64,000 nucleotides of DNA, from positions 1 to 64,000 of the forward strand of contig JAUPSS010000002.1 of assembly GCA_040285825.1 (NCBI GenBank), given 5' to 3'. Under the pieces are notes generated by a model. That model had not been told where the DNA came from. It saw only the letters and a program-made list of their open reading frames with translations, and did no database searches. This stretch comes from Eukaryota sp. TZLM1-RC. Its lineage: Eukaryota; Protista; Metamonada: BaSk clade. Made by a program: the position numbers and the translations under genes. This document shows, in pieces, positions 897 to 58,303 of this stretch (positions are counted from its first letter, which is position 1; every line of letters starts with the position of its first letter).

Positions 897-1240
897 TCTT
901 ACATAAATTGTATAACAATGGAATAAGTGTCCTTCAATACCAAGATTGGGTTTTGAGAAAAGTTCCTTTTTCCTGAGGGCTATCCCTTTTAAACCTTCAT
1001 CAACATTGGTTCCCTGCAGGTGTGCTGGTCTTTCTCGACCATTCTGATGTAGCTTTACAACTGCAGACAATTTTAGTGAAGCATTTCGAAATAATTTCTG
1101 CCGACCTTCACATTATTTAAACATGGTAAGCCCGTGTTGAAGAGTCGTCTCGTGTCTATTCCATCATCCCGGAGTTATACACCTATAAGATAGCTTTTTC
1201 TATTTGCGCTCTTACAATTGAAAGTTTCAATGTACGAATA
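897..1240 (-). pseudogene. Fanzor (TnpB-like) C-terminal relic plus right-end module abutting the ATG at 896
   Basis: Minus-strand translation NRHETTLQHGLTMFK*CEGRQKLFRNASLKLSAVVKLHQNGRERPAHLQ fits the Fanzor C-terminus (HGL-x-C, RD-x-NA-x-NI, G-x-x-RP-x-x-L). 992-1021 is 27/30 identical to 50160-50189. Confidence 0.75.
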
Positions 1241-2499
1241 GTACACTTTGACCTTATTGTATGTATTTTATTTTTTATATTGTATTGCATGAAATCATTT
1301 CAGCTTTTTTGTATTTTGTTTTTGGTAATTTTGGTAGCTTAACACCTCAAAGTGGGTTGTTTTACATCGAATAGGGAACTACCACTTCTATTCAGAAAAT
1401 TCAAAGGACTAAATATAGTAATAAGAGCTAATCACTGCTCACTGGTTACTGGTTACCTTTTGTTCTCTTCTTACCAGCTATAGGTGACACACATCGCAAA
1501 ATCAACTGTTGTCAACTTCTGCATTCATAGATAGAAGCGTATTATCCTGAGTAATTGCTTTTATGATATCTTGAGGTTCCTTTCTATGGACAGTTCAAAT
1601 TGCATCTGGTCAGCAAAATTCACGTAATTCGTTAAAAATTAGAAACATGTCATGTGTTCATGCACTTGTTAGGGTGTAACATAGGTAAGATCACTTAAAG
1701 CAGCCATTCATGCCAAGATTGAAGACGCGCGACTTCATCATTATTAAATTATTGAAATGTGCATCAAATCACGGTGTCTGTACTGTTCAAGTATTATTAC
1801 CAGACTGTTTACCAGAATATGTTTGCAAGTGTTGAAGCCAGAATGTGTGATAATGAAAGGCCTCAGTATCTGTCTAGTAGATAGTTTTTGTAATTATTTC
1901 ACACGATCAATGATCGTGTACTTCTGGGGAATTTCCCCATTTCAGATAAAAATGTGTATTTTGTAATGTTAAAATTGGTGCTGAGTTTCACAATTGTAAT
2001 TTTACACCTTAAAAAGAACTCATTATGAACCAAATTGAGATTCATACACAAATACATAATAAACATACACAGGTATGGTTATTAGATTACGATCTGCCAT
2101 TCAAACATTGTCAAAACAATGATTGTAGGGTGAATCATTGAATAGATAACCTTGGAAAGCTGGTTGTATTTGGTCAAAACAGGTTCATGTTGTCTGAAAC
2201 TGTGCGACGAAAAAGTTCGCTAAAATAGGAACCAAGAAACATTCCGGTACCCATGGCTGGTAGCTGTGCCCCTAGTAAGATGGAGTTGGACATTGTACTT
2301 AAGATAAGGTGAGTTGAAAGAGCACATGATGTATTGGAATATTGAGACAACTTCTCACAACTTGTGTAAAACACCAGAATGTAAAAGGAAACGGAACCCA
2401 AAAGTGGAAATGGAAGTGGAATGGATTCCACTTTGCCAAGACTAGTTTATGGGGTGAGTGAAAAGTGAGGGAAAAGTGAAAACTTTTTTTAAAAAATTT

Positions 2500-3750
2500 C
2501 ATTTATTTCAATAAAAAACTATACGGCAAAGTTAAAGCTCTATATCTTCATTACCCAAATCAGCCAAGAAGAATTGACTGGAAGTTTTTCTTTCATAAAA
2601 GCGTCCAAGAAATAACAAAGCTGAAGATAATAATGGAACAACACCTTTGAAAATTGAAAATACAATTCTGTTTTGCCAAAAACTCTTGTCAAAAACTCTT
2701 CCAGTACGTTGTTTAACAATTTTAACAAAATCGTCCAAGAAAGATAAAGCAAGAGGTCCAAGCGAGCCATGAAGGGAAACTGCAAATGGACAGAGGACAA
2801 AAATGAGTATGTGATTCTGCATTCAAGGATAACAATTTTGCTTTATATTTGTCCATTTTGGCTTTTTCAGAAACAGTTAAGGTAGTCCTTATATTTTGAT
2901 TGAGCCACTGGTTATAAAAGGATCATTACACACATCAGTGGATCCCACATCCGTAATAATGGTAGTACCTTCAAGAACTTCAAGCATTAAATTACCCCTA
3001 TTTCGGCCAAAAAAAATTAAAGTATCTTCATCAACCAAACGGGAGAGTAATGGTTCTTAATAGGAAACAATTCTATGTGATTTTGTTATACAATGGAGTT
3101 GATCTCTTACTGCATCATGAACTTTTGATCAGAAAGTAACAAAATGTTTACAATTGAATAGATGATTTGGAGAAATTTTTGATCCACATTTACAAATCAA
3201 ATTATGAGACACGTTATCAGGCCAAAGAAAACATTGAAGGCGCATTGTACAAGAAAATTCGGTATCATCTAAAAGAAGACCATAAATTTGAGGAATCTGA
3301 GTAATACGAAGAGGAACTGTTTTGGGCATCTAACAAAAAATTCGCGAAAGCGGGATTATTTTTTTTGGCTGAGCCAAGACGAACATTAAATCCAAGCCTT
3401 CGAAAATTATTGTTAATTTTTGTTGCAATTTTTTAACACAATACCTCAAATTAACTAGTGTTCTAGATGGTATTTCCTGCACATTATTGGGAAAACATTT
3501 ACTCCAGATTTCAGGGGGCAAACAATCAAGAGCATTACCAAAGTCTTTTAGATAGTTGTTGCTTGTAAAATTCAATCAATTAACATCATTTGGAAAACGA
3601 TTCCAAAATTCAAAAACAAATTTTTTCCCTCCACCAAGAAAAGCAGCTTGACAGAGAATAGACGATTTAGTGAAATTAATTCCACCAAAATCAGATGATG
3701 AAAATACATGACTTCGAATTAGTTCAGGATTGACATCAATCAAAGATACA
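2500..3750 (-). mobile_element. Degenerate CRE-like non-LTR retrotransposon, 3' half (family C)
   Basis: Broken ORFs 3330-3575, 3129-3329 (CKC...HLFNCKHF) and 2532-2822 (PFAVSLHG...FWQNRIVFSIFKG) are homologous to the endonuclease ORF 4213-5421. Boundaries approximate. Confidence 0.8.
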
Positions 3751-4183
3751 ATTAAGATGAAAAGTGAAAACCTGCCAAAACCAAGTTGAAGGTTGTAAAC
3801 CTGTCAAAACAGGCAATCAGAAGTCGAGAATGGGGAGACAAGTGCAAAGTTTGATAAAGAAGCTCATTATTTTCACTACATGTCAGACGCACTACCTGTA
3901 CCAAAGATGATTCAGGATTATATGGATTCGCTGCTGAGTGAAACCATCCAGGAGCAAGCTTGTATTGAGTCCTACTTGGAGCTCCATGCCAGTCCTCCTG
4001 AGATTCCACCTTCACATGTGAGTTCTTGTTCAACCAAATGTAACAAGGGAACTTTTTCTCATGAAGACTCTCCTTACCATTTGGTTGAAAATACACTAAT
4101 TGGTCAGATTGACTCTTCCTCTGTTTTGGTTGAGAAGGGTTAATGTGTCCAAGTAGTCCATCATGAAGTTTTTAAAAATTGTT

Positions 4184-7072
4184 TTTTTTTAAAATTTAAT
4201 TTTATTCTAAACCTATAAATCAACATCTAAAAAATCCATCTCTCCCAAAACAAAAACACTAGATGCAACTCTCTCATAGTGAGATCCAAGAGAAAGCAAA
4301 GCATCAGAAACCATCTTCAACATCCCCTTAAAAATAGAAAACACAATTCTATTTTGCCAAAACAATCTGTTGAAATTTCTGCCAGTTCTTCTCTTTACAA
4401 TCATTTCAAAATCATCCAAAAAACGTAAAGCAGTTGGTGCAAGTGAACCAAAAAGGGAAAATACAAATGGATACAAATTGTATTTTGCATGCTGTAGACT
4501 GGCCAATTTGGACAAAGGTTCATTGTATTTTTTGAATTTAAAATTTTCAGCATTTGAAAGGGGATTATGAATTTCAGAATTAACAAGCCTTTCATTTGAG
4601 GCATTACAAGGATCAACAGACATTACATCCAATAAAATAAAGCTTCCATCTAATCCAGGTAATATGACATCACCTCTATTATTCTTATGAAAATCATTTT
4701 CAGCATCAAACAGATTTGACAACAGAGGTTCCAAGAAGGATTCAATTCTATGAGATTTACACATACAATATAACTGGTCTCTTACAGCATCATGAACCGT
4801 GCTTCTAAAAGTAATAAAATGTTTACAATTTAACAAATGAGTAGTTGTAATTTCTCGAGAACATTTACAAATTAAATTATGAGGTAAATTATCAGGCCAG
4901 ATAAAGGAACGAAATCTCATATTCAGAGTCCAAGCAGAATCGGATAAGAGAGTACCATATACTTGTGGAATTGTTGTTACTAAGGCAGAAGATGTACTGT
5001 CACACATATCTTGTAAAAGATTTGCAAAAGCGGGATTCTTTTTCTTGGCCAAGCCAAGTCTAACATCAAAATCCAAGCTTTCAAAAATCTTTGACAATTT
5101 TTGTTGAAGCTTTTTACAGCAAAACTGTAAATTAAATAGAGATCGGTTTGGAATTTCTTGAATTGATTGAGGAAAACATTTGGTCCAAATTTGTGGCGGT
5201 AATTTTTCAAGTTCACAAGATAACTCATACAAATAGGGACTACAATTGGGGACTAACAGATGAGAATCATCAGGAAATCTACGAGAAAATTCATAAATAA
5301 AATTTTTGCCACCACCCAAGAATGCTGATTGACACAAAATTGAAGATTTAGTAAAACCAATACCACCCAAATTTGCTGAAGAAAATAAATGGCTTTTCAA
5401 CATTCCTGGTTCTACATCCAATAAATCAGCAAAAAAATTCTGTTCTCAATGAATTAAAAGAACGACAAAAATCTAATGCTATGGAAGGAGCACAAGATCT
5501 CAAAAATGTGGGTTATTCTCCCAGTGTAGCAAATTTTTAAGCATGAAAAATTGAATATGCTTTTTCTATATCTAAAGAAGAAATTGAATCAAGTTCAATT
5601 TTCATTTTTTTCCAAAATAACTTGCAATTCATTCTGAATTTGAGGCACATTTCCTAACCAACAACCAAGGAACTTAAAAGCATCACTACTATAATTAGTA
5701 AAAGGGACAATAGAATCGTTTATCACGAGGTCTTGAGCAGAAGAGCCAATCAGAAGGCATTTGCTGGCATTAAGATGAAGCCCAATATTTTCATATGAAT
5801 CGGCAATTTCTTGAGCAACCAATTCTAGTAAATCAAATGAACCAATCAAGGATATATCATCCATATAAGCAACTATTTTTATTGAAGGGTATTTTTGCTT
5901 AATGATATTTAAAGTTTTGTGAATAGCTAAACAAAACAATAATGGGCCTAAAGGATCTCCCTGCTTCACTCCAGAAGATGATTTAAGACCAAATGAATTA
6001 AAAATTAAATCTGATTTTTTCCCATAAAAATGGTAGAAAAAACTCGATAGCTCAGGAAAATCAGATTTAATAACTTCAAAAATTGCTTCTCGCTTTACAG
6101 AATTAAAAGCATTTTTAGAGTCGAGATTAAAAATAAAATTATTTTCCTCTGCATTAAAAAAGGTATCAGAGGCAATAGCAGCAACAGAAGCACCATCAAT
6201 TGTTTTGATTCCAAATTGATGAGGATTCAAAAATGTAGAAGCTTTGTCTTTGACACGATCGAAGACAATTGATGCTAGCAAACGAGAAAGAGATTCACCA
6301 ACAGCAATTGGGCGTATTCCATCAGATTTAATTCCGTTTCCAGGCTTTACTAAAGCAATCAGACGTGCTGCGAGTAATTCAAATGGAGGATTAATTTTCA
6401 AAACAATCAATTGTTGAAAATAGTGGGCTAGATCATCAGCAATTTCGGGAGCACTGGAACACGCTATTTTTAACAGATCAAAAGAAATTCCAGATGGGCC
6501 TGCTGCTTTCCCCTTTGGCAATTTTTGAATAGCTTTAAGAACTTCAATTGCAGTAATAGGATTTTCAATCCAAAAAGGACACACTTCAGGCTTGCTGCAC
6601 TTGAAATTTTCTTGAGGATGCAACTTTTGAAGTTTTTCAAGGGTATCAGAGTTTGCATCAGTCAAAGAAGAGGAAAACAAAGACTGCTTTGCGGCACCAT
6701 AACGACCACGTAAGCACAATTTACGGCAAATTTTTGATTTTACAATTTTTCTATTTCCAAATTTTTTTCTTAAAACAATTTTTGTTTTTTCTAGCAAAAT
6801 ATTTCCAGAAGGATGAAATATTCCACTTATTATTTTTCAATTCAGAAGTAAAATTTCTCATTTCCATTGAGAAGGGGATTGTGCTGGCGGGACTTATTTC
6901 TACTGGGATCCGGATCGGGGGTCTTACGGTATCAACGGCTTTACAATTCGTACAAAACAGAAGTTTTCGACCATTTCGTGAATCTGCAACATCTTTTTTG
7001 CAAAATGGACAACAAAAATTACTGTTTTCAGAAGGGGAAGAAGAGGGAACACTAGAAGCATTTAACAGTTGA
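4184..7072 (-). mobile_element. CRE-like non-LTR retrotransposon (family A), 5'-truncated, RT + restriction-like endonuclease
   Basis: RT ORF 5595-6797 (IRPIAVGE, GVKQGDPLGPLLF, YMDD). ORF 4213-5421 has CKC...HLLNC, RGDV...LDV...KY, PFVFSLFG. Short poly(A) at 4182-4190. TSD TTTTAAAAATTGTT at 4170-4183 and 7073-7086. Frameshifts fall at homopolymer runs. Confidence 0.9.
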
Positions 7073-11609: not shown

Positions 11610-13210
11610 GGTCTCAAAGATTTTGGAGACAAAATTTTAACGAACACGGTAATCAAAAAAATTCGCAAACATTTGATTGCATATTAGTAATTGGTGAATA
11701 GAGTAAAGATTCTGGTTTCAAAAGGAAAGGAATGTACCCATTTAAAGTTACAAGCATAACAAAAATATTGAGACAAGCCGGCGATGCTCTGAATTGTTCG
11801 AAATTGATAACTTAACGTTCTTTATTACATGATGCTGTTAGAGACACTGTTTTTAACATGGCGCGAACTGCAAAAATCTGGTGTATTAAAGAGCCTCTGC
11901 TGAAGGAAACACTGTCATTGAATAATTTTGGTTCTGATGATAGAGGTGATGTATACTGTGATTGGATTGAGAACTCTGAAGCTGTTGTTGACTTTGTCTC
12001 ATGTAATGTTGCAAATGACACTTTGGTTCACAGAAGAAAACTTAATCCTGTAGGTGCTTTTGATTTTAAAGCAAAAGAAAAACATAGAAAATATGACAAA
12101 GATATCGAAGAGGCTAATGCTGGTAGAAATACACGACTAGTATTTATTGCTTTCCCATTTTCGATAAACGGAAGACTATCAGTAGAAGCAGAAACTTTTT
12201 TGAATGACCTCCAAAAAATAGTTCAAGAAAAAACAATGAAAAGATTTGATATTTTTTTATGGCGCTCTCGGAATCAATTTGCCATTATTAATAGATTACC
12301 TCGGTATTTCAATCGAATTAGAGAAGCTTTAGCTACACAGCAAGCAGATCAAGATTTTGTAGAGGAAATCTTGGTTCAATGCTTTTCGTCCCATTAGTTA
12401 TGAATTAATTTTATTAAGTGTGCATGTTCAATAAATATTTGTTTTTGACAAGCCGGTTACCTTGTTTACTTAGTTAATGAGGCATTTACTTTAAAGATGT
12501 CATAAATATGTTAAAAACGGTGAAATTGGAGAAAGCCTGGAAACTTTATTGGAATATGATGATCAAAACTTTACAAAAAAATTGAACTCAAATAGACGGG
12601 AGATTCATGTCAGAAAGAAGAATTGGAAATTGCATATAGATTCAAATAATGGAAAAAAGGCATAATTGAAAGCAAAAGTCAATGAGAAGTAAGAGGAAGC
12701 AATGAAATCAAGAGAAACCTAGTCATATACATGAGTAAGAATGAACCATGACGTCTACCAATTGTAGAAATAGTAGGTGAATTTGAAAGTACAACCAACA
12801 AGAGGATAAGAAAACGAATTTCAAAGGCTCTTGGAAAACGATGAATTGGGCAACTATAAAGTTCGTCAAGTAGTTCCATGGGGTCTGAGACAGTGTCATC
12901 AATGCAAAACCTTCTGGAATCGAGATACTAATTCTGCTCTAAATATTCAGATGGTGGATGAAGAGCTTCTGGATGAAAGAGAGAGATCAGAGGTGTTCAA
13001 GAGCCAACAGTCTCAACCCGGGGTCATTGAACGCAGTAATGAAAACTTGAATGATGTTGGAAAGGATTCTGAAGGTGATGGTATACCAATGAGTCCAATT
13101 CAACAATCTGGCATCAATACATTATCACGTATAGCGAAAGCAATAAATGAATAGTTTTGAAGCAACTTGAACTATCGAAATGTTACTATTTTTGTTCTAT
13201 TCCGCCAGCA
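11610..13210 (+). pseudogene. Fanzor pseudogene (RuvC-II to C-terminus plus right end), split by a non-LTR insertion, ending at the ATG at 13211
   Basis: Removing the insertion joins ILVIGE*SKDSGFKRKGMYPFKVTSITKILRQAG to YLVYLVNEAFTLKMS*IC. ORF 12831-13154 has PWGLRQCHQCKTFWNRDTNSALNI...ERERSEVF. Confidence 0.9.
11782..12446 (+). mobile_element. 5'-truncated CRE-like element (family B) inserted in the Fanzor relic
   Basis: ORF 11858-12397 matches the C-terminus of 53249-54157 and 61041-62057. Perfect 10-bp TSD GACAAGCCGG at 11772-11781 and 12447-12456. Confidence 0.92.
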
Positions 13211-14542
13211 ATGGTTTCCTGTTGTTCCTCTATCTCCCTTGGTCCACGCCTTTATAGTGATGCTAAATATGAACTCATGTCAGGCGATCTATGTCTTTGG
13301 AGTCAAGATTCAACTTCCAAGTTTGACTCAATTGGATTGATATATGTCATGAGGTTTTCCAGACTCCAAAAAGCCCATATGCTGATGGAAATACGTCGCA
13401 TTGATGACAAAATATCTTTAGTAGCCTCTTCGATGACTAATCGTTTTTCTCATTCTCCAGAAGGTACTCAACCTGTCACTGTACTTGCTTTTAGAAGATT
13501 GCTTGGTGATCGTAGCTCAGAATTCGAGTCCAAAGTAACTTCCTTTGTCGATAGAGTTATTGATGAATCGTCTGATCCCCAGTGGACTGCTGATCTCCAA
13601 AATGAAATTAAAGCCAACTCTAATGCTCTTTATCACAAAATGTGTCGATTGATTGCTGATCTTTACTTGGAGACTGGACTTTCAAATCAAGACATGTTTT
13701 CTCAGCTGTGCTCATCTGTACTTCGCAAAAGAGCTATCAATTTGGGGTCAATGACATTATTGTCTCCCATGAAAGTCGACATTTCTTGTTTTGATAAAAC
13801 TACTGAAGAAGATATTGAAACTGAGGAGGCTACCCAACCCTTTACTCCAATGTCTGCTGCTACACATTTTGATTCTTATTCGTCGATTGCAAACACGCTA
13901 CAAACTGGTGATCTTGTCTTTATGCGATCACGAACTGTTGCTGGTGCCATCATTAGACTAGGAACAAACTCTGAGTGGAGCCATATTGGCATGGTTATTA
14001 ACCCTAAGGATTGTCCCAACTCTGATTCAACCATTCCTGCTCAACTACTTTTATTTGAATCCAGTACAAACCGTGTTAATCAAAGGTCTTTTCTTTCTGG
14101 TAATGTTTTCAGAGGTGTTGCGATTGTTTCGTTGAGAGCAAAGCTATTCAATTCTGTCTATTCTTATGCTGCTGTGTCACGTTTAGAGGGGAATGTTAGT
14201 CGTACAGAATTGCTAGATACTTTACTGAAAGTAAAGGAGGAACTTCAAGGGAGACCTTATGAACAGAGTATGTTTCAATTGGTGCGATCCATTGCTGGTG
14301 ATACAGGGTTCTTCCGTAATCGTAAGGTGGACTTATCTTCTCTGTTCTGTTCAGAACTCGTCGCTGAAGTATTTCAACGCTATGGGTTGTTGAACAAGCT
14401 TCGACCTTCTAATACTTTTGTCCCAGAAGATTTTGTTCCTGGCAAAATTGAATTCAAAAATGGGGTTACTGCTGGTCCTCTCATCTATGTAGAAGGATTA
14501 GGAGATATGAACAAAGAAGGTGGTTATAATGTTGCATTTTAA
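13211..14542 (+). CDS. Permuted papain-like NlpC/P60 enzyme (YiiX/YebB, C92-like), 443 aa
   Basis: LQTGDLVFMR...WSHIGMV...LLFES...GRPYE...LFCSELVAEVF...VPEDF shows His before Cys. First ATG is 13211; the track start 13157 is TTG. Confidence 0.85.
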   Translation: MVSCCSSISLGPRLYSDAKYELMSGDLCLWSQDSTSKFDSIGLIYVMRFSRLQKAHMLMEIRRIDDKISLVASSMTNRFSHSPEGTQPVTVLAFRRLLGDRSSEFESKVTSFVDRVIDESSDPQWTADLQNEIKANSNALYHKMCRLIADLYLETGLSNQDMFSQLCSSVLRKRAINLGSMTLLSPMKVDISCFDKTTEEDIETEEATQPFTPMSAATHFDSYSSIANTLQTGDLVFMRSRTVAGAIIRLGTNSEWSHIGMVINPKDCPNSDSTIPAQLLLFESSTNRVNQRSFLSGNVFRGVAIVSLRAKLFNSVYSYAAVSRLEGNVSRTELLDTLLKVKEELQGRPYEQSMFQLVRSIAGDTGFFRNRKVDLSSLFCSELVAEVFQRYGLLNKLRPSNTFVPEDFVPGKIEFKNGVTAGPLIYVEGLGDMNKEGGYNVAF

Positions 14543-14665: not shown

Positions 14666-15033
14666 CTACAGATTGACAGATTTGACTACCAAAACAACAG
14701 AATCACCCCTAAGAAACATTTTAGAGATAAATCTATCTTTAACAACCATTGATATTGACGATTTGTCATCGCTTGTGCGAGAAGGCTCTGTCCATATCAA
14801 TGGTAAGTTGAATATAATTGACTCCAAACCTCTTGAACATTTTCAAGAACTATGTTGAGATGTCTGTCAAAAGCTCGAACTCTACCAAGAAGTTTCCTGT
14901 TATGACGAAGAGTGATGAGAACTTGGTTGTGATTATGTACAGCATCAAGAAGAAGGGAGTAAGGTCCTTTTCTAAATTCCTGTTGTTCGAGACGTTCTTG
15001 CTCTATGGGATCCGTTTTATCAGTTGAAGACAT
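14666..15033 (-). CDS. SNRPD2: Small nuclear ribonucleoprotein Sm D2, two exons (15033-14830 and 14797-14666 in the preferred model)
   Basis: Exon 1 GPYSLL...NRKLLGRVRAFDRHLNIVLENVQE. Exon 2 is in another frame: IWTEPSR...KDRFISKMFLRGDSVVLVV. Joined product is 111 aa. Confidence 0.93.
14798..14829 (-). other. 32-nt intron in SmD2 (GT...TG in the preferred model)
   Basis: An intron is needed to restore the frame. Removing GTTTGGAGTCAATTATATTCAACTTACCATTG gives ENVQE|IWTE. Exact boundaries are uncertain. Confidence 0.65.
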
Positions 15034-15120
15034 CGGCTAACAGCAAAGAAGTGTCAAATACTAGTAACTGGTTGAGAATAATGGAGAATAAGTGATTAGG
15101 TCTGAAAAGTTCAGTTGTTA
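15034..15120 (-). promoter_or_regulatory. Shared ATG-abutting upstream module (type B)
   Basis: The 35 nt before the SmD2 ATG (GTTACTAGTATTTGACACTTCTTTGCTGTTAGCCG) are 28/35 identical, without gaps, to the 35 nt before the STRIP ATG (44077-44111). Confidence 0.75.
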
Positions 15121-18666: not shown

Positions 18667-18745
18667 TGTTGGCGCCCTAAGGCTTATATAATATGAATAG
18701 AAAATAAATCAGACTTTTCTTTACTACAATAGACTTTAGGCAACA
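18667..18745 (+). repeat. 5' LTR (79 bp)
   Basis: Direct repeat of 25763-25841 with TG...CA ends; contains TATATAA and AATAAA. Confidence 0.95.
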
Positions 18746-18822
18746 ATAATTATTGGCCATTTTAAAGTCAAAAGGTATACCATAACTTCAGCATTAGTGA
18801 ACATCCCCAGACACTTTACAGC

Positions 18823-25632: not shown

Positions 25633-25762
25633 TTTTTAGTTTATATCGATTATTTATATTATATCGATTATATGTATTTATTTATAGTTATTTCGTTATT
25701 TGTATATAGTTTTTATTTCATATTCATATGGGCTGATTTATTTTGAAAAAGGGAAGAAGCAG

Positions 25763-25841
25763 TGTTGGCGCCCTAAGGCTTATATAATATGAATAGAAAA
25801 TAAATCAGACTTTTCTTTACCACAATAGACTTTAGGCAACA
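25763..25841 (+). repeat. 3' LTR (79 bp)
   Basis: 78/79 identical to the 5' LTR; preceded by a polypurine tract. Confidence 0.95.
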
Positions 25842-32109: not shown

Positions 32110-32122
32110 ATAAAATCAAATA

Positions 32123-40303: not shown

Positions 40304-41766
40304 CAACAAAAAAAATACGAATCAGTAAAAGATGAAGCATGTTCTGTAAAATCTATTGTTAGATTACCAATGGCAATTAAAACGGTTTCCACGTTCGATT
40401 ACTCCTGGTTTTTTTTGAATGAAACCGCAGCAGTTCCAAATTTTGCTTCTGATAACCCTGCTATGGCCAAGCCCCTAGTAGAACGTTAGAGTATATCAAA
40501 ATTGCTGAGTATGCTTCAGCAATGGTCATTCCTTGATATTGAGAAGGATTCATATCACGATCATCAATAAATTATTTTTTATTCTTGAATTTTTCAGCAG
40601 TAACCTTCTATAAATTCAAGACCATTCTAGATTGAATGACCGATATTGTTTCTCCATTGATTTCGATACTAGGCAAGAGGGACTTTGTTTTTCCAAATAA
40701 AGTTAGGTGTTTTAATCTTATCCATTTTTACAATTCTATCCCTTAAAAATCAATCAACAATTTTGTCATAACAATGACAAACCGACTTTTTAACAAGAAT
40801 ATTCATATATTCGGTACGGTAAAAAAACAAGTCCAACAGACCTGTCTTATCGATATGGACGTGAGATGTTTCAGAGGCAGAGTGTGAAAGAGTGTAATCT
40901 TCTTGATTTTTAACAAATTGTCATTGTAAAAAATAGCCCTTCACCATTTGAAAGCTCTCAATAAATCAACTCTTTTGTACATGACTTTTGAATGGATGAG
41001 GAATTGGATTTTTCTGTCTCAATGACCTGCTTTTCATTGATGGGGTTTTTGGTTGGTGAAAGTTTTGGTTAAGCTCTGTTGTTGAGTTTTAACATGTGGC
41101 TATATTTGGAACAACTTTATTATTTTTTGTTTGTTATTTTCAACACAATTATGAGCAGAACATTTTGTCTTGATTTTTGATGTATTTGACTTGATTTGAA
41201 GTAATTGAATTTGTATGAGTTGACAAAAACAAATTGATAATTCTATTTTCGAAACACATGCAGACAGATTCTAGTTTGGTTTCCGTTTCACCACCACCTA
41301 TTTCATATTAATTAAATTTATTTGAATGAAAACAATAATAATTTATAAACAAAATTTAATCATTTAATACAATAATTTCTGTCTTCATCAATAAGGAGAA
41401 CGTAACCTTGTCTTCTATTGAACATAGAAATGATCTTAGATTTGAAACATTCTTGAATAACGGAAGAGAAATTTTCATCAGATCGGAATTCGTGATGTTG
41501 TCATCGCTATTGTGACCACAACATAAATTCAATAATGGCTAATAATTATGTTACAGGAATTTGAAGGCAAAGGAATTATTGATTTACCACCAATGCTGTA
41601 TTCCCACGTTCACTATTTGGTTTTGGTGTTTCATGTGCGATAAACTCGAAAAAAGGATGTGTTTGTGTCAGTTTTGCTCTTTATTATTCCTCATTGTATT
41701 GACTAGATTAAGAAAAGATATCTAAAAGAACATCAGAAATGTACAGCAAACGTAAAAAAACAAGAG

Positions 41767-44076
41767 CTACTTCAAATTCTCCATAAAATACTTGGATAAC
41801 AGATCATTTCTATAGAGATACTCACATGGCTTTGCGACTCCTGGGTAGTGAATATACCAAAGTTCATAACTGTTCTTGACCTCTCTCGTGCCATTACTCA
41901 AATTAGAGAGTGGCAAGGTTCCTTTGACTCCTCGTTCCTCTGAGAATGAAGAAGAGAAAGGGGGGGTGGGAACAGAAATGTTGTCTGTAGGATAAGGAAA
42001 CAACAACCATTCATCTAACAGAGATTCATCGACATCCTGATCAGTGAGAGGTAAGTGACAATAGATTTGAGTGATAATTGATGAATTTCTAGAAGCCCAC
42101 CGTTTCCCCAAATGCCGAGTTAATCTTTTAAATAACCTCAAAACAATAATTTTGACATCCAAACAATCCAAATCAAGTAAATGTTTAAGAATCACCTGGG
42201 CTTTCATTGAAGCAAGATAGGAAAGAGCGCTGTTTTCTGTTTGAACAAGTCCTTCCAATACCATACAAAGCAAAGTAACAGTAACTAAAGATCTGGCCTG
42301 CTTTGGAAAAACCGTCAATTCTTCTTCATCATCAGATAGGTTTAATGAACGTACACTAAAACTAGCTCTGGACAGAAGTGCAGAATGGTGACGTGATAGG
42401 GAACGTGATAGAGGGGTTAAAACCGCTTTTGATGAGGGACGTAAAGAGACAGGGGTTGAAAATTTCTCATCATCTACATCATTCTGTTCCTTTTTCAGTT
42501 TCACCGTCCTTTTAAAACCCCCATTCTGAGGTGATAATGGAACATCCTCACAGCGGTCGACAATTTCATCATGACCAACACCATTTTCCTGACCCTCTTC
42601 ATTTTCTTCTTCATCCTCTTCTTTTCCAGGGCCAACTATTCTTGATTTGAGTGGTGTTCTTGGAGGATCAGCGGTTTTTGCTGAGGATAAAACTTCTGAG
42701 TAACTAAGTTCTGGTGGTGAAATTACTGGGAACTCAAGGAGCCTTAGGACAGGGTCAAAGTTTTCATTTGTTTGAAACAATGATGTAGTGTCTTGATTTA
42801 ACAACTTTAGTATTAAAAGATTGCAACTTGAAGATACTAATAACTTCCTAATAAACAAAAACTGATGAGGGCTATTTGACAAAGAGTGAAACAAAAATTG
42901 TCCAATAATAGAAACAGTGGCACGAACCACTAATTCTCGATGACGTTCTAGTTCGTGATCGGCCATTGAGCAAGTGTTGCATTCACAATCAGAGTTTGAG
43001 TGCCTGTATTGAAGCAAAGAAGACGAGCACAGGGAAAAATCGCTAACCACGTCTAGTATAGTGCCATCGTAGGTTTTATCATTTGGTGAGCTAATTCCTG
43101 GTCCAGCATTCAAAAGTAACCGTAGCAAAACAATAACAAACCTGTGGATATCATGGTAAATTTGCCTAAACAAAACCTCAAACTCGGTATTTGGTTTATC
43201 CAAAAGAGTTTTTTCCTCTTCTTTTTCTTCTCGAATCCCTTCTAAAATTTCTAATCCTTCTTTGATAAATTTAGGTTCTTTATACACTGGTGAAGGATAT
43301 CGCCATTTGACGTGGTCTTTGAAGATATCATAAAGTTCATTATTTCTACTAATCACCATTGAAACACCACTACTGGGTGGTGGTACATCACCTAATTGAA
43401 TATTTAAAACCAGATTCAGACAAATTAAAATCTTCTTGGTACAACAAAATTGACATTCGACACCATCAGATAATATTCTCAACAACAATAACGAAGCCCC
43501 TCCACCACTGCCACCAACGCTTGAGTTTCTGGGACCATCTTCCGTAACAACATCAGAGTCTGCAGTGGTGAGCGCCTGTTTAAGCAAAGGAGAGGAGCGG
43601 CAGAATACCATGGTGACATAGACAATGCCTAGAAGAGTGGCAAAGTCATTGGTTAACGGTAAAAGAAGTGGATCATCAGTACCAAGTGAAGCAATTGTAG
43701 AAGAAAGACGTAGAATGTGATAAAAAGTGGTAGGTATAACACCAAGCTCTAACAACGTAGAAGCTGCTTGTTTGCCTAGAGAAAGTTGAGTTGAACCATT
43801 GGGTGAGTGCCATGGACATCCAATGAGAGCATAAAGAATGGCATTGGAAGCAGAAGTAGCTGAAGAAGGTGCATCTAAACGGTCTAACAGTGTGGATAAT
43901 GCAGTACGTCGTTTTTCCTGCGAAGTGGCAACATAATCTGAATAACGCCCAATTGATCGTTCAAAGTCATTGTGATAGTCCTGAAACAGAGAGCTTTCAG
44001 AGTGTGAGAAGAATGCATTAATTTCTACAAGAGGGGTTTGTATAATGCTAAAGGACGAAGCATGAGCAGTCGACAT
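41767..44076 (-). CDS. STRIP1/Far11 (FAM40) STRIPAK subunit, 769 aa
   Basis: RHRELVVRATVSI, LVSSSCNLLILKLLNQD and LRLFKRLTRHLGKRWASRNSSIITQIY match the STRIP/Far11 C-terminal region. ATG 44076 is preferred because module B ends there; 44160 is an alternative. Confidence 0.8.
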   Translation of the reverse strand: MSTAHASSFSIIQTPLVEINAFFSHSESSLFQDYHNDFERSIGRYSDYVATSQEKRRTALSTLLDRLDAPSSATSASNAILYALIGCPWHSPNGSTQLSLGKQAASTLLELGVIPTTFYHILRLSSTIASLGTDDPLLLPLTNDFATLLGIVYVTMVFCRSSPLLKQALTTADSDVVTEDGPRNSSVGGSGGGASLLLLRILSDGVECQFCCTKKILICLNLVLNIQLGDVPPPSSGVSMVISRNNELYDIFKDHVKWRYPSPVYKEPKFIKEGLEILEGIREEKEEEKTLLDKPNTEFEVLFRQIYHDIHRFVIVLLRLLLNAGPGISSPNDKTYDGTILDVVSDFSLCSSSLLQYRHSNSDCECNTCSMADHELERHRELVVRATVSIIGQFLFHSLSNSPHQFLFIRKLLVSSSCNLLILKLLNQDTTSLFQTNENFDPVLRLLEFPVISPPELSYSEVLSSAKTADPPRTPLKSRIVGPGKEEDEEENEEGQENGVGHDEIVDRCEDVPLSPQNGGFKRTVKLKKEQNDVDDEKFSTPVSLRPSSKAVLTPLSRSLSRHHSALLSRASFSVRSLNLSDDEEELTVFPKQARSLVTVTLLCMVLEGLVQTENSALSYLASMKAQVILKHLLDLDCLDVKIIVLRLFKRLTRHLGKRWASRNSSIITQIYCHLPLTDQDVDESLLDEWLLFPYPTDNISVPTPPFSSSFSEERGVKGTLPLSNLSNGTREVKNSYELWYIHYPGVAKPCEYLYRNDLLSKYFMENLK

Positions 44077-44300
44077 CGGCTGATAGCACAAAAATATCAA
44101 ATAGTAGTAACCAAATATACAATGATAAAGGATATCAAAAATACCACTTTTCAAAGGCATGTCTGTTACCCTTCTTCACTGAATTTACAAAATAAACAGT
44201 TGAATCAACTCTTGTACAAATAGTCTGGTCTCCCTCTTCCTTTTAATTTTGGTAGTTTATGAACAGATACAAAATTTACCAAAGTTTTCATTTTTTTCAA
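44077..44300 (-). pseudogene. Fanzor C-terminal relic plus type-B right-end module
   Basis: Minus strand reads LVNFVSVHKLPKLKGRGRPDYLYKS* (about 44206-44265), then about 130 nt ending GTTACTACTATTTGATATTTTTGTGCTATCAGCCG-ATG. Confidence 0.65.
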
Positions 44301-49155: not shown

Positions 49156-50100
49156 TTAATTTACTCTGAGGCCAGAAATTCTTTTAATTGCGGAAAGTAT
49201 TATTGTATTCAAAACTTCGCGAGACTCTTTTCTTTTTTGAACCAAAGTACTAGCCTGAGTGATCATATTTGGTAAAATTACTGATTCAACCTCCTGTTCT
49301 ACTTTACAATTAAAATAACCAGATCTTTCAAGTGAACCTACTACCCTAGTTTCTAAATTTTCAACCAAAGACTTTGCAAAGTTAGCAACAACGACCTTCT
49401 TGGAGACCTTTTCCTCTCTTTCTTTCTTTTCCTCAATTTGCCTCTTTCTCCTCTCAATTTCATCCCTTTTTCTTCTTTCCATTGCTTCAATCCTTTCTGT
49501 TTGGGAAAGTTCCGCATTTCTACGTTGACTAAAGTCATCCCTTCTCCTTCGGAGTGCAGCAATCTCTTCTTCCTCTAGAACTTCTGCCAAACCTTGTTCC
49601 AAGGCCTTGGAAACAAGAACATCAACTATAGGGACAACTTCACGATCAAAATCAAAAAGGTCACCTTCCTCAATCTGAGTGGTAACGTCAACCCCAGACT
49701 TTACCGGAACGAACTCAGGGGTGGGGGGTCTTTCTAGAAAAGGGTCAGTTTGCAGGGCTATGTTGATGTCTTCGGGTTGGTCAACAATTTCTTCAAGATA
49801 TTGCTCTGTTTGTATTTCATTATGGAGCCGTCCCTCTACAGGTGGTGGGCCATCAGATACTAGAGTTGAGGTAGATGAATGAGATTTGAGACGTGATTTG
49901 ACTCTCTTGCGTGAAGGAGAAGATTTTTGAGGGGAAAAGTGTTGTTGCATTTGAGAGCGAAACATGGGAGTATTGATGGTTGAACCCCTGACAATACGTC
50001 TGTCATACATCATGTTTTGAGGCATAGTTCCATCACGGTAAGGCTTTGAGGTCTGTTCTATTACTGCTCGAGGCTGCTGCAGAAAGTTGTATGAATCCAT
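49156..50100 (-). CDS. RSPH3: Radial spoke protein 3, 314 aa
   Basis: YNFLQQPRAV, NMMYDRRIVRGST, PPVEGRLHNEIQTEQYLEEI, FLERPPTPEFVPVKSGVDVTTQIEEGDLFDFD. First ATG is 50100; the track extension from 50235 is Fanzor-derived. Confidence 0.95.
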   Translation of the reverse strand: MDSYNFLQQPRAVIEQTSKPYRDGTMPQNMMYDRRIVRGSTINTPMFRSQMQQHFSPQKSSPSRKRVKSRLKSHSSTSTLVSDGPPPVEGRLHNEIQTEQYLEEIVDQPEDINIALQTDPFLERPPTPEFVPVKSGVDVTTQIEEGDLFDFDREVVPIVDVLVSKALEQGLAEVLEEEEIAALRRRRDDFSQRRNAELSQTERIEAMERRKRDEIERRKRQIEEKKEREEKVSKKVVVANFAKSLVENLETRVVGSLERSGYFNCKVEQEVESVILPNMITQASTLVQKRKESREVLNTIILSAIKRISGLRVN

Positions 50101-50475
50101 CACAATAAACAGAGTTTTTGAGAAGTTAGAGATTTTTCTCTTTGGCACTCTCTTTGTTGAACCTTCATCAACATTGGCTCTCTGTAGGTTTACCGATCTA
50201 TCTCCACCATTTACATGCCCCCTTCTCACTGCCAATATATTGAATAAGGTTTTTCGATCTCTGCTTCACAAACTTTCATGCTTCACACATGGTAAGTCCA
50301 TGACGAATAGACTTCTCTTACCTATTCTATCGGGGCGTTTCTTTACACGTGTTAATTGTTCCAATTGTTTTCTCCGATTTCCCACAGTTAAGCCAATTAC
50401 AACTGGTTCGAAACTCATCAATTAATAAAACCATGAAACCACCCTTTTTTTGATAGAATTCTCGTACCGTTTTTT
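50101..50475 (-). pseudogene. Fanzor relic (RuvC-II to C-terminus) abutting the RSP3 ATG
   Basis: KKGGFMVLLIDEFRTSCNWLNCG...IRHGLTMCEA*, then after a frameshift SL*SRDRKTLFNILAVRRGHVNGGDRSVNLQR. Confidence 0.85.
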
Positions 50476-50555
50476 TAATAAAAAATTTTCTTTTTAGTTG
50501 TTATTTTAAATTCACATATCTTCGTTGTTTCCACTTCGTTGTGTGCTATTACCCG

Positions 50556-53187: not shown

Positions 53188-55467
53188 TTTTTTTATTTAT
53201 TGAATTTGCACACTTAATTAAATTAACTCATAACTAATGGGACGACTATCATTGAACCAAGATTTCCTCTACAAAATCTTGATCTGCTTGCTGTCTAGCT
53301 AAAGCTTCTCTTATTCGATTGAAAAACCGAGGTAATTCATTAATAATGGCAAATTGAATCCGTGAACGCCATAAAAAAATATCAAATCTTTTCATGGTTT
53401 TTTCTTGCACCATTTTTTGGAAGTCATTCAAAAAAGTTTCTGCTTCATCTGATAATCTTCCATTTATCGAAAATGGGAAAGCAATAAAAACCAGCTGTGT
53501 ATTTCTATCGGCATTAGCCTCTTCAATATCTTTATCATATTTTCTATGTTTCTCTTTTGCTTTAAAATCAAGAGCAGTCACAGGATTAAGTTTTCTTCTG
53601 TGAACCAAAGTATCATTTGCAACATTACATGAGACAAAGTCAACAATAGCTTCAGAATTATCAATCCAATCACAGTATACATCACCTCTATCATCAGAAC
53701 TAAAATTATTCAGAGAAAGTGTTTCCTTCAGCAGGGGCTCTTTGATACATGATATTCTTGCAGTTTGTGCCATATAGAAAACAGTGTCTCTAACAGCATC
53801 ATGTAATGAAGAACGATAAGTTATCAATTTAGAGCAATTTAGAGCATGGCGCAAAATGAGTTGAGGTGAATTCGAACAAATACATTTTTCTTTTGATAAT
53901 AATTGATTAACGGGGATATTCAAATATAATCTCATTTTTGTTACAAATGCTTCATTAGTGGCACACAATCCTAATCTTCGTGGTACAATGGTTACAAAAA
54001 GTGAAGAATCTGATGACTTGCTTTCACAAACAACCTTTTCCAATAACAATGAGTGATGATCTTGATTTAAAACAGCCGAGCTGCATATATCATTATAAAG
54101 ATCATTTTCATACATTCCAGTCAATCGTTTCTGTAATGTTCGAAGAGTGTACTTCAAATTTAAAACATTCTTTTCTGGAATATTGCCATTGAATGATTGG
54201 GGAAAGCATCGACCCCAATTTTCTGCATTAATTTTTGAAATTTCTTCATTTTAGCAAAAACAGTGGAACTTTGCGTTGCCATCAATAAATCTTCCCAATC
54301 TGCAAGTCTTTCGGAAAACTCAAAGATTGCATTTCTGCATCCACCAACAAAAGCACACGAGGTAAGAATAGAAGCCTTCGTCCAACCTAATCCGCCATAA
54401 TGTGGACTAAGATAAGCATGGTTTGGAATTTGGAACGTTTTACATCCCAGTAATTGTGACAATACTTTTGCACGTAATTCATTAAACTTCTGAGCCAAAG
54501 GTCTAGTGACAAGAGTATTTGTAGATCGAAATATATGATTAAAATTGGAACTAAAACACAGTCTTATAATGGTAAATTTGATGTGTTTTTGTATATCTAA
54601 ATTCATCATTCGGTCAATTTTGTCAGAAATTGAGTTCAACTTTTCAAACAATTTTTTGGTAATTTCATCATTATTTCCTAAAAACGAACCCAAATGACGA
54701 ATAGCATCAATTGAATATAATTTGGCTTGAATTTCAATACCATCAACTATTGTGGAAACTGGAGAATTCAATAACAAAACACATTTAAGTAAATTAAGTC
54801 GGAGACCAATTTTGGTAAATAATTCTTTAAAACACACAGTTGCTTGTTTCACAATATTTAAATCACCAATAAGCACAACATCATTCATATATGCAATCAT
54901 TTTTAGTGAAGGAAACATCTCTTGAATTTGCAATAAAATAGGATGAATGGCCAAACAAAAGAAAAGAGGTTCCAGCGGATCTCCTTGCTTTACACCACTT
55001 GATGAACTCAAAATGCAATTACCAAAATGTAAATTAGAATATGTACTATATGTTAATTGAAAATACGGCATTAATTCAGGCATATATTGCAATAAAGCAC
55101 CATGGATACTGCGACGACTGGGTGAATTGAATGCATTACTAAAATCCATTGACATACAAACATTGGATTCATTTTGGCGAAATAATACATCAGTAGCAAA
55201 TATCGCTGAAGAGACTCCATCAGTGGTATTAATTCCATATTGAAAGGGTAATAAAATCTTTTTTGCTTTCTCATTGAACCTGCTCAAGCAACACGCACAA
55301 AAAATATTTTGTAAGCTCTCAGAGACTGCAATAGGTCGAACATCCATTTTTGAATTTTTGACAAGTGCAGTCAAACGAGAACTTCTTAATTCTTCTGGAT
55401 ATCTGAGTTGACCAGTCAATATTTTGTTGAAAAATTTGGTTAATAAACCAAGACAATCCTCTGAAGA
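53188..55467 (-). mobile_element. CRE-like non-LTR element (family B), 5'-truncated
   Basis: RT ORF 54160-55419 (VRPIAVSE, QGDPL, YMND) and endonuclease ORF 53249-54157. Possible 7-bp TSD CTGAAGA at 53181-53187 and 55461-55467. Confidence 0.92.
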
Positions 55468-55504
55468 GTTGAATTAATATATTTAAAAAAGAATTGATTT
55501 TGTT

Positions 55505-56218
55505 AAACTTCCACACTTAACAAAATAAACTCATAACTAATGGGGCGAAATTCATTGAACCAAGATTTCCTCTACAAAATCTTGATATGCTTGCTGTCTC
55601 GCTAAACCTTCTCTAATTTAATTGAAATACAAAGGCAATCTATTGATTATGGCAAATAGAATTCGGGAGCGCCCTAACACGATGTCAAATCTTTTCATTG
55701 TTTTTTCCTGAACCATTTTTTTGAAAATCATTCAAAAAAGTTCCTGCTTCTACTGATAGTTTTCCGTTTATCGAAAATGGGAAAGCAATAAAAACAAGTG
55801 GTTTATTTCTATCAGCATTAGCTTCTTCGATATCTTTGTCATATTTTTTATGTTTCTCTTTGGCTTAAAATTCAAGAGCATCTACAGGATTAAGTTTTCT
55901 TCTTTGAACCAAAGTGTCATTTGCAACATTACAGAAGACAAAGTCAACAACAGCTTCAGAGTTCTCAATCCAATCACAGTATATATCACCTCTATCATCA
56001 GAACCGAAATTATTCAATGACAGTGTTTCTTTCAGCAGAGGCTCTTTAATACACGAGATTCCTGCAGTTTGTGCCGTATTGAAAACAGTGTCTCTAACAG
56101 CATCATGTAATGAAGAACGATAAGTTATCAATTTCGAACAATTCAGAGCATGACGCAAGGTGAGATGTGGTGAATTCGAACAAATACATATTTTTTTGTT
56201 AACAATAGATTAATGGGA
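55505..56218 (-). mobile_element. CRE-like family B 3' fragment
   Basis: ORF 55865-56158 (HALNCSKLITYRSSLHDAVRD...RGDIYCDW). Confidence 0.85.
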
Positions 56219-56440
56219 ATTGATTGTAAAAAGAAGAACTAACAGAAATATTAACAGATTGTTTTGGCAAAATAGAATTGTGTTTTCTATTGTTAAGGGG
56301 ATGTTGAAGATGGTTTCTGATGCTTTGCTTTCTCTTGGATCTCACTATGAGACAGTTGCCTCTAGTTGTTTTGTTTTGGGATAGATGGATTATTTAGATG
56401 TTGATTTTTAAGTCTTTTAATAAGTAAATATTATTAAAAA
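56219..56440 (+). mobile_element. CRE-like family A 3' fragment
   Basis: Close match to the reverse complement of 4200-4405. Confidence 0.85.
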
Positions 56441-56992
56441 AAGATCAATGTCAGCATTCAAATATAATTCCATTTTTGTTACAAACGCATCAAATGGAAT
56501 TTAAATTAAAAAACCTAAATGATTTACAATTTTAAAAAGGAAATTCGGGAATTGGGAAAACAAAAAAAAGTGTGCAAATATGACTATTGAATTGAACCTT
56601 TTTATAGACCTTTATTTATCATTGTTGAACAAAACTATCTTTTATCAACATCAATGACATTTATAATAACATTCTGCATATGTTCTCACTAGAAAAAGTT
56701 TTTGAATTACCAATCATTATGACATCCAACGTGAGTTGAAATTAGCAGGGTTATGTAAGCGACATGTTGGATAATGCATTGTTGAAAGAAGTCATCTTCT
56801 ATCCCGATTCTTTGTTCCGAAACATGTTCTAATTATTTCGTTTGAACTTAATTTGAGCAAAAAGAGGCCATATAGGACAAGTTATAGAAACTGGTAGATT
56901 GATTTATGCTGTGTTTAGCTTTCTGCTAGCTTTAAACTTTTGTAGTTGCACAATTTACAACCATAATGAAAATCAATTTACAATACAAATAT

Positions 56993-58177
56993 TTAAACAT
57001 AATGGGTTTCAAATCCACAACCACGCAGATCGAATTTTGTTTTGACTTCCTTCTGTAGTTTTCTGCTTCTAAGTAAGCCCAAGTCGCTTGCCTTAAAATC
57101 ATTGTTACTTAGATCTAATACCTCAAGGGGTTCCAACTGGTGACTCTCCATGATAGACGTCAAAAACTCGAAACTTTTCCCACAAAGTCTATTGCTTGAA
57201 AGAGAAAGAAAAGTAAGGCTATTTGATTGAGTTGATGCTGCCAAAATATAGATGGCCCCTTTATCTGAAATTTGATTTAGTAACAAATTTAAATTCTTGA
57301 GAACTTTTGAGTTGATGATAAGTTGTGCTATTTGTTTCGAATAGTGATCATTTATGAAGTTATTCGAGAAATCAATCGATTCTAAGGATAAAAAAGGATT
57401 AATTGAGTGCAGAAAAATAGGACAGTTAGGAGTCAAGATTTTTCCCAGTTTATTATGAGCTAGTGAAACGTGGCGCAATGCTGGCAGTGACTGGAAAGAA
57501 GGCAATAAATGCAACAACAACTGATCACTAATCGAAGAATCTGAAATTTCAAAGGAAACTAAAAGTGAAAGTTTAGAGAGTCCAAAACCAAGTGATCTGC
57601 AAACCTCATCAGTCAATGAAATTCCAGAGGCTTTTGAGCCGGGATCAATATCCAACAGAAAATCTGAGCGTATATAGTAAGAAGAAAGACAAAGTCGCAA
57701 ATCTTCTAAATTTGGTAAATAATTTAAAAGTTGATCAACAGAAAGTTCCCTACTTCCTATTTGAGATAAGGAAAGCTTACGAACGAAAGTTCCAGCGTAT
57801 TTCATGGTGGAAAGGAGTTCTGAGAATTGAGGTATCACAAGGTCGCGGTCAAAAAAACTGGGACTAGGTCTTTGATCATCACTGATGGCATTCTCTAATA
57901 AGTAGGTCAGTTGATGCTCTATATAGTACCTCTTCGAATTAGTCTTTGGTGCTCCAATAACAACATTCATCGGTAATTTGGAATTAACCAGCTTCTTCTG
58001 CCAATATAACTGATTCTCTATTTGTACAGCATATGAGAGTGGAATATCTTCTTCCAAGACATCAAAAACTAAATCTTGAAGTTCCGAAGAGAGTAAAGTA
58101 TTGATTTCTGGTATGAAATCAAGTATATTGTAGACTATGAAATTGAGAGCAAGGTCTTCAAGAGTGGGAGGAATCAT
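56993..58177 (-). CDS. Leucine-rich-repeat protein, TCTE1/DRC5-like
   Basis: PTLEDLALNFIVYN...DIPLSYAVQIENQLYWQK resembles the TCTE1 N-terminus. RI-type LRRs follow (LAHNKL, FSNNFI, LLLNQISDKGA, LSSNRL, LDLSNN). Confidence 0.75.
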   Translation of the reverse strand: MIPPTLEDLALNFIVYNILDFIPEINTLLSSELQDLVFDVLEEDIPLSYAVQIENQLYWQKKLVNSKLPMNVVIGAPKTNSKRYYIEHQLTYLLENAISDDQRPSPSFFDRDLVIPQFSELLSTMKYAGTFVRKLSLSQIGSRELSVDQLLNYLPNLEDLRLCLSSYYIRSDFLLDIDPGSKASGISLTDEVCRSLGFGLSKLSLLVSFEISDSSISDQLLLHLLPSFQSLPALRHVSLAHNKLGKILTPNCPIFLHSINPFLSLESIDFSNNFINDHYSKQIAQLIINSKVLKNLNLLLNQISDKGAIYILAASTQSNSLTFLSLSSNRLCGKSFEFLTSIMESHQLEPLEVLDLSNNDFKASDLGLLRSRKLQKEVKTKFDLRGCGFETHYV

Positions 58178-58303
58178 GAAAAGGGAGGTCCAATGGTGTT
58201 AAAAAGAATATCAAAGCATTCGATTCACCATCTACAAAAATTCTGTCCTTCCTCTCCCTGCTCTCACATCATCAACTATTTTCTTGAAGTTCTTACATGC
58301 CAT
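58178..58303 (-). pseudogene. Short Fanzor C-terminal relic upstream of the TCTE1-like ATG
   Basis: MACKNFKKIVDDVRAGRGRTEFL* (58232-58303) fits the A-x-x-N(F/I)...G-x-GRP-x-x-L end motif; 54 nt separate it from the ATG. Confidence 0.55.

Follow-up and report, generated by a model that had tools for sequence, protein, structure and literature searches.

Introduction

Among the systems described so far, the Fanzor1 nucleases PpFz1 of Parasitella parasitica (PDB 9cf0) and SpuFz1 of Spizellomyces punctatus (8gkh) are the best matches for families B and E of the elements reported here and for a copy from the strain GEM-RC1. Both have a right-end omega-RNA of 75-90 nt, where the present elements bear a predicted omega-RNA-like tail, and the target-adjacent motif (TAM) of PpFz1, 5'-ATN (PMC11423790), includes ATG. 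The DNA analysed is a stretch of 64,000 nt (the window; GCA_040285825.1, JAUPSS010000002.1:1-64000, to which the window coordinates below refer) from Skoliomonas litria, listed as Eukaryota sp. TZLM1-RC (PMC11603281), a soda-lake protist. S. litria is a free-living metamonad with a genome of 31.9 Mb, 55% of it repeats (PMC11316075). Decayed right ends of Fanzor1 elements precede host genes in the window, and several of them end exactly on the start codon. SPu-1 differs from this arrangement in its terminal inverted repeats (TIRs) and its target-site duplications (TSDs) of TA (PMC3627910); no start-codon bias was found in the papers searched, and the copies in the window are dead.

The elements MCi-2 and MCi-5 of Mucor circinelloides (PMC3627910) are similar in lacking TIRs, in near-identical 3' and variable 5' regions, in targets starting with AT (ATAATT..., ATTTAT) and in having an unknown transposase. 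They differ in TSDs of 11-12 or 6 bp, whereas none of at least 12 nt was found in the family of the sister strain RCL, and placement at gene starts has not been reported for them. The Helitron2-associated CRe-1, CRe-2 and CRe-3 of Chlamydomonas (PMC3627910) occur as one-ended, 5'-truncated copies with variable duplications of 7-19 bp, like the nested copy at locus L007 below, but they target TTTT and share their ends with Helitrons; no RepHel or Helitron end was identified here. Homing by TnpB of IS200/IS605 and IS607 (10.1101/2023.11.20.567912; PMC10711439) is probably alike in the guide taken from the right flank, the target motif that equals the TAM and the invariant flank held in the scaffold, whereas neither TnpA (Y1 or serine recombinase) nor a GG core was found here. 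IStrons are rendered harmless by splicing, the present elements apparently by a restored ATG and a lent promoter. The P element, Mutator and Tf1 are biased to the 5' ends of genes, with insertions of either orientation spread around the transcription start. The present ends, in contrast, all face the gene where they lie near a start, and those of one family meet the ATG to the base. The proteins belong to a known family. No report of this targeting rule, or of any start-codon targeting by Fanzor or TnpB, was found in the literature searched, whose coverage is thin for subscription papers.

Results

Fanzor1 right ends lie at host gene starts

The window holds 13 host genes, set among Gypsy and non-LTR (long terminal repeat) retrotransposons. 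With the relic upstream of its NlpC/P60 gene as query, Skoliomonas proteins were recovered, including an intact 1473-aa Fanzor of the sister strain RCL, accession KAL0225525.1. When that intact protein was the query, RCL copies alone matched and no intact S. litria Fanzor was found; a profile search gave two short S. litria Fanzor fragments. Four further S. litria loci were picked through Fanzor fragments, their neighbours being ignored, and window and loci together comprise 146 kb. Loci L007, L008 and L009 are from S. litria, L003 to L006 are from strain RCL, and L011 holds a Fanzor end of GEM-RC1.

Of the 19 right ends in the S. litria sample, 15 are no more than 80 nt from a host ATG on the same strand, and about ten lie on the ATG itself. 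The chance for a random non-coding position is 1.7%, and the 3' ends of non-LTR retrotransposons are so placed in 1 of 12 cases (Fisher p 2e-4). Outside the window the count is 8 of 11. All four copies used as queries end before a same-strand gene, at distances of 0, 0, 22 and 70 nt (Rpc34, topoisomerase I, an unknown protein and a RING protein), and four of the seven incidental ends in the fetched loci are at or within 14 nt of a start (p 3e-6 alone). Every near-start end faces its gene, and no S. litria end is close to the 3' end of a gene. About 10 of 40 host genes have a Fanzor end on the ATG, in an S. litria sample that is enriched by the choice of loci; SmD2, topoisomerase I, Rpc34, an MCM subunit and Rrp46 are among the genes with docked ends. 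Thus position and strand relative to ATGs are not random in this sample, in agreement with an earlier note on the window, and we have little doubt that the placement at starts is real.

The reading that we prefer, and to which we give about an even chance, is that several families of Fanzor1 elements, non-autonomous and lacking TIRs, inserted with a bias for gene 5' ends at family-specific ATN motifs, that the ends described here are their right ends, and that the end is kept as a minimal promoter.

Relics and tails in the window

Relics were scored with protein profiles seeded solely from sequences outside the window, reversed sequences serving as the null (maximum 1.9 bits), and tails were matched with right-end DNA profiles for families A, B, C and E. 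All peptide motifs quoted in the earlier note were found where it had placed them, strand included. The five relics that it named are Fanzor1 remnants according to profiles, DNA identity and tblastn, those at NlpC and RSP3 scoring above the null by protein profile.

The family-A relic at 897-1165 (minus strand) consists of a decayed C-terminus (HGLTM...GRERPAHL) and an omega-RNA-like tail that ends on ATG 896. The host gene receiving this end (1-896, minus strand) has an open frame from the ATG and no Pfam match, and is truncated by the contig start. The relic scores just 2.0 bits by protein profile, but is 66% identical in DNA over 219 nt to the relic at RSP3 (E 1e-20) and matches the family-A DNA profile (E 1e-8). 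A terminal hairpin with the start codon in its 3' arm (CCAU with AUGG) is predicted at 893-921 (minus strand). The RSP3 relic (50101-50476, minus strand; VLLIDEFRTS, HGLTMC, SRD..NI), whose tail is internally shortened, occupies the head-to-head gap between eIF2B-epsilon and the gene for radial spoke protein 3 (RSP3; 49156-50100, minus strand), and gives 13.9 + 5.8 bits by protein profile and E 4e-9 with the family-A DNA profile. At the Rrp46-like RNase PH exosome subunit (32123-32707, minus strand) the family-A right end is a tail only (32708-32808, minus strand; E 1e-15), whose predicted hairpin pairs UUUCAU with the AUGAAG of the gene.

Family B is represented at SmD2 (14666-15033, minus strand) by a tail only (15034-15088, minus strand; E 2.5e-7), in register on the ATGTC of the gene. 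At SmD2 and Rrp46, the last stretch of the element alone is still recognisable. A family-B-like relic precedes STRIP/FAR11 (N1221 + DUF3402; 41767-44076, minus strand). It comprises the C-terminus GRGRPDYL and a 165-nt structured tail (44077-44290, minus strand), in register on the ATGTC of STRIP. The tail matches family B at E 1.4e-4, GRGRP is in register with the family-B C-terminus (p about 0.007), and the fold has a z of -2.6. The start at 44076 is correct, as the 769-aa NCBI protein and the in-register alignment of the GEM-RC1 orthologue show. No Fanzor relic is detectable upstream of that orthologue.

The family-C relic at 12440-13173 (plus strand) runs from RuvC-II (VYLVNE..T) to the TNB motif (CHQC..WNRD) and includes the right end. 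It scores 54.5 bits, is 74% identical to copies P0001/P0002 and matches the intact RCL copy P0006; its left boundary is a non-LTR 3' end at 12437. The host gene, a permuted papain-like amidase (NlpC/P60, PF05708), occupies 13211-14542 (plus strand). That tails end at the ATG holds to the base for families A and B; at NlpC the homology stops at 13173, 37 nt before 13211, and the intervening 13174-13210 (plus strand), absent from other family-C copies by DNA alignment and profile, is probably the native leader or promoter.

The remaining relic of the five, at 58178-58529 (minus strand), precedes a host leucine-rich repeat (LRR) protein (TCTE1/DRC5-like by its LRR matches; 56993-58177, minus strand). 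It is older, a middle-domain remnant being joined by a deletion to ACKNF..GRGRTEFL-stop and then to a 55-nt tail. Positions 58529-58299 match the middle of a Fanzor1 (tblastn E 8e-4; 0.5 bits against a null of -2.7). This is the weakest relic, with its C-terminal motif by itself within the null; it was rejected at first on that motif and later accepted through the independent middle domain.

Contrary to the statement that no relic lies away from a start, a family-E right end is found at 1815-1941 (plus strand; E 4e-33), with ERPQYLSSR-stop and three hairpins, ending on ATT. It is 83-89% identical to the copies at L008 and L009 and has a fold z of -3.4, and no host gene lies behind it.

Related tails had also been claimed at five further genes. 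Rrp46 and SmD2 carry right ends, as given above, while eIF2B-epsilon, kinesin-14 and 'APC1' (46649; no Pfam match) were rejected, with no profile match and no significant alignment. What kinesin and 46649 have in common upstream comes from the 3' end of a non-LTR retrotransposon. These failures, together with the weakness of the A896, STRIP and TCTE1 peptides taken alone, are what can be said for regarding the shared tails as native promoter motifs and the peptide motifs as chance. Against this, the tails at L007, L008 and L009 directly adjoin DNA that unambiguously codes for Fanzor1, and among about 100 genes no other promoter matches them. The explanation by native motifs is hardly credible overall, and is refuted for families A, B, C and E.

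Assignment to Fanzor1 is based on the RuvC-II glutamate and the TNB zinc finger with RD..N in the NlpC and RSP3 relics, with a weak match to PF07282. The family proteins match PpFz1 and SpuFz1 at E 1e-11 to 1e-25, the best PDB match being PpFz1. The RuvC-I DPG is not preserved in the window; family E has CDPGKRD and P0006 has DPNQYD. As for IS607 or Fanzor2 elements, no serine recombinase was found among the called genes of the fetched loci, and the junctions are AT-based with no GG core. For the CRe type, no RepHel was found among the annotated genes, and the target is ATN, not TTTT. As the earlier note had stated, the window contains no intact Fanzor by profile scan and no transposase among the scanned open reading frames.

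Family-specific motifs and possible selection on copies

The right end of each family is fixed and bears a tail of omega-RNA size with predicted structure. Family B ends in register, with GC[C/T][G/T] followed by ATGTC, at SmD2, STRIP, a TUG-domain gene, Rpc34 and topoisomerase I. All five of these genes start with ATGTC, against 4 of 33 undocked S. litria genes (p 3e-5). The docked B ends have G or T at -1, where native starts have mostly A or C; speculatively, this base could distinguish filled from empty alleles. Family A is in register at A896 and Rrp46, its tail being shortened at RSP3; at L008, g505 apparently starts at an ATG within a family-A tail, and one further copy, which breaks off ahead of the ATG, lacks a gene. 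Of the three family-E copies, one is exact (at an MCM gene), one falls 14 nt short (at an ankyrin gene) and the one in the window is geneless. For family C, 22, 37 or 70 nt separate the end from the start. Insertion at the ATG by several families, as had been proposed, agrees with A and B, but not with C, and with E only in one of three copies.

Such placement could also arise if targeting were by sequence only, any ATGTC-like motif being hit, and selection did the rest: in a genome that was compact at the time, coding insertions would be purged, neutral copies erased as retrotransposons turned over later, and promoter-forming ends would survive. Of the four copies away from starts, three have other elements behind or within them. 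Fanzor relics are split by retrotransposons at window 12437 and L009 18237, so that the Fanzors are older, and old copies retain just the last 40-60 nt. However, only 4.4% of the ATGTC sites that are non-coding or starts are starts today, and even with gaps of 60-300 nt five of five gives p 0.03-1e-4. Moreover, the family-B copies, which are 82-86% identical and have long coding remnants, are all already at starts, family C lies close to starts but leaves the ATG unused, and no S. litria end lies near the 3' end of a gene. We regard motif-only targeting with selection as a rather unlikely explanation, and return to an insertion bias for gene 5' ends, which is suggested because family C sits upstream of starts without the use of the ATG.

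The start codon in the predicted terminal stem

In the predicted folds, the last stem of the tail has the ATG in its 3' arm. For family B, ATGTC is paired with a GACAT-like arm and a small invariant hairpin is enclosed between the two, with 88% of cells paired against 15-52% when the alignment is slid. In family A a two-sided change occurs at the base after ATG, with CCAU/AUGG in one copy and UCAU/AUGA in the other. The last hairpin of family E takes in AT, and the hairpin arm of the young RCL family is ATGATCA. The predicted pairing probability of the ATG reaches 0.78 for docked starts, against 0.47 elsewhere (p 0.005, a post hoc comparison of related copies). The tails measure 55-165 nt and have predicted hairpins, with z of -2.3 to -3.4 for E, RCL and STRIP; single B tails are not significant. 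An Rfam search gave no match.

Scaffolds of Fanzor1 right-element RNA (reRNA) have been predicted to fold the TSD in and to run about 15 nt past it (PMC10711439). The earlier note had taken the start of the host coding sequence as the guide; the ATG is more likely a target motif or TSD than the first bases of a guide, because ATG(NN) is predicted to be paired inside the terminal stem. On this folding model the start codon is probably a target motif, TAM and TSD absorbed in the omega-RNA scaffold, and the guide would begin at codon 2-3.

The same stem allows for an element that supplies the ATG itself, through loose insertion or through erosion of the flank by self-cutting and microhomology repair until a terminal ATG(TC) joins the host frame, in-frame fusions being kept. 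The predicted stem includes the ATG, the RCL family has ATGATCA at non-start sites, g505 of L008 apparently starts inside the tail, and the RCL polyprotein has a PolB-type 3'-5' exonuclease. In addition, STRIP starts with ATGGAC in GEM-RC1 and with ATGTCG in S. litria. Where they can be tested, on the other hand, the N-termini are native (STRIP, with one residue more; SmD2, in the same register). For SmD2, queried with its first exon alone, residues 11-75 align with residues 11-75 of Sm D2 chain 8xi2_d. Further, the RSP3 relic is still separated from eIF2B-epsilon by about 80 nt, which is usual for head-to-head genes here and fits displacement and not erosion. Supply of the ATG by the element is therefore unlikely, and insertion at a host ATN motif is the reading followed below.

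A nested copy at L007 and the ends of the elements

At L007 (minus strand), two family-B ends lie in tandem, at 6173-6031 and 5918-5578, ahead of the TUG gene. The order is an older B end, a copy of the TUG coding start (17/19), a 5'-truncated second B element and the intact gene. The duplication is of 19 nt, i.e. 14 nt past ATGTC. These sequences suggest a second insertion rather than a simple duplication, because the older tail is less like its neighbour (76% identity) than are B copies at other loci (84-86%).

The nested copy bears on the possibility that Fanzor itself directs insertions, by a cut at TAM plus seed followed by one-ended copying of element DNA or by reverse transcription of its RNA primed at the cut, with no transposase and with fixed right ends, variable 5' ends and duplications of 7-20 nt as the outcome. 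The 14 nt past ATGTC fit the cut distances of Fanzor1, 14-21 nt (PMC10432273). The RCL family has fixed 3' and variable 5' ends, no TIR was found, genes for non-LTR reverse transcriptases (RTs) are abundant, and 5'-truncated Fanzor1 elements with variable TSDs are known (CRe-1/2/3, MCi-2; PMC3627910). Against it, this is a single duplication, for which tandem duplication is possible: a search of 67 genes for an upstream copy of the first 20 coding bases gave L007 TUG as sole positive, the other 66 being negative, and the four RCL copies show none. Nor is any sequence common to the B targets past the pentamer, contrary to what guide matching would lead one to expect, and direction by Fanzor would by itself leave the start bias unexplained. 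We consider this quite unlikely, and retain short-motif integration with a 5' bias.

No direct repeat of at least 12 nt across the right junction was found in four RCL copies. The likeness to MCi-2 (conserved 3' end, variable 5' end, no TIR) was seen in the RCL family only, and the TSD of 11-12 bp with a fixed initial motif was not found in those four copies. A search of the 6 kb upstream of eight copies, four from RCL and four from S. litria, gave no inverted match to the right end, although left ends may be lost.

The RCL copy P0006 (L003 10001-14422) encodes a 1473-aa polyprotein with a 2A-like DVEANPGP, a PolB 3'-5' exonuclease (PF03104, E 5e-13) and a C-terminal Fanzor1. Similar copies occur at L004, L006 and L011, there are at least a dozen in RCL, and a split copy is present in GEM-RC1. 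The RCL family ends (ATGATCA hairpin) are at L003 14489, L004 14507, L005 14452 and 18508, and L006 15334. Four of these five face the 3' end of a convergent gene, the distances being 0, about 30, 37 and 426 nt. The TGA stop of the host, read on the opposite strand, forms the terminal TCA at L005 18503. An insertion of about 790 nt flanked by inverted repeats (L006 14500-15290) splits the omega-RNA region of one RCL copy. At L011 12400-13300, between the GEM-RC1 Fanzor end and a cyclophilin gene, about 900 nt hold a large inverted repeat and an open reading frame that by eye resembles a small DNA virus capsid.

Other features of the window

Non-LTR retrotransposons (RVT_1) of at least two families are present at 2535-6836, 11781-12437, 53192-56490 and 59102-62296, among others; some copies are 91-95% identical, and several break up Fanzor relics. 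Two Gypsy-type LTR elements (18615-25839 and 33180-40327) encode gag-protease, RT, RNase H and integrase and carry an internal tandem repeat of 48-57 nt. The SmD2 frame needs a 32-nt intron at 14829-14798 (minus strand) with GT...TG borders; judged by eye, this is a non-canonical 3' splice site or a one-base assembly error. Downstream of STRIP, at 41350-41450 (minus strand), the peptide GYVLLIDEDRNYC is RuvC-II-like with a score within the null, possibly a very old Fanzor relic.

Discussion

Under the preferred reading, the element would integrate at a short family motif, namely ATGTC (B), ATGG/ATGA (A), AT[G/T] (E) and probably ATA/ATC (C). The motif, shared or duplicated at the right end, would fold into the terminal omega-RNA stem as TSD and TAM, with the guide taken from codon 2-3, and a bias for gene 5' ends would act on top of it. 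As the ATG would be re-created behind the element, the gene would keep its native N-terminus. The promoter and leader zone would then be taken up by the final 40-80 nt of the element, which would probably serve as such and outlast the rest. As long as it was active, Fanzor would make cuts in empty alleles at 14-21 nt beyond the motif, favouring copying of the filled allele. The gaps between head-to-head host genes, in the window and at loci L003-L011, are 27-240 nt (e.g. 59 nt between an RPAP3-like gene and BBS1, window 30304-30364), so bidirectional promoters must be very small, both fitting in the gap. In the related Giardia, short AT-rich patches suffice as promoters (PMC1885649).

Several observations weigh against this reading. 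Four S. litria ends are away from starts, none of seven sister-species ends is at a start (RCL 0/6, GEM-RC1 0/1), and the RCL family end contains ATG yet is never at starts. The paired positions of family B show one-sided changes alone and no two-sided ones, in copies that are related. In young B copies the last 45 nt are no better conserved than the coding part, so retention is deduced from old copies alone. For no S. litria copy was a left end recovered that would show a TSD on both sides. Finally, the four query copies were called by AUGUSTUS and may be enriched beside expressed genes, a caveat that leaves the incidental ends significant on their own.

It is also conceivable, if improbable, that a Fanzor installs itself at starts with no partner transposase, by an ATG-containing TAM, a cut in the first codons and one-ended or RNA-templated repair that rebuilds the ATG, its omega-RNA end then becoming the promoter of many core genes. 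If that were true, self-insertion by Fanzor would amount to genome-wide promoter turnover driven by an RNA-guided nuclease.

These ends offer a natural case in which a mobile element lands in the densest part of a genome and leaves the gene intact, with the start codon as probable target motif. The docked core genes suggest that omega-RNA DNA has replaced promoters on a large scale. It is predicted that some Fanzor orthologues have TAMs containing ATG, and two questions become testable in one organism: what role Fanzor has for eukaryotic elements, and how Fanzor1 elements without a transposase move.

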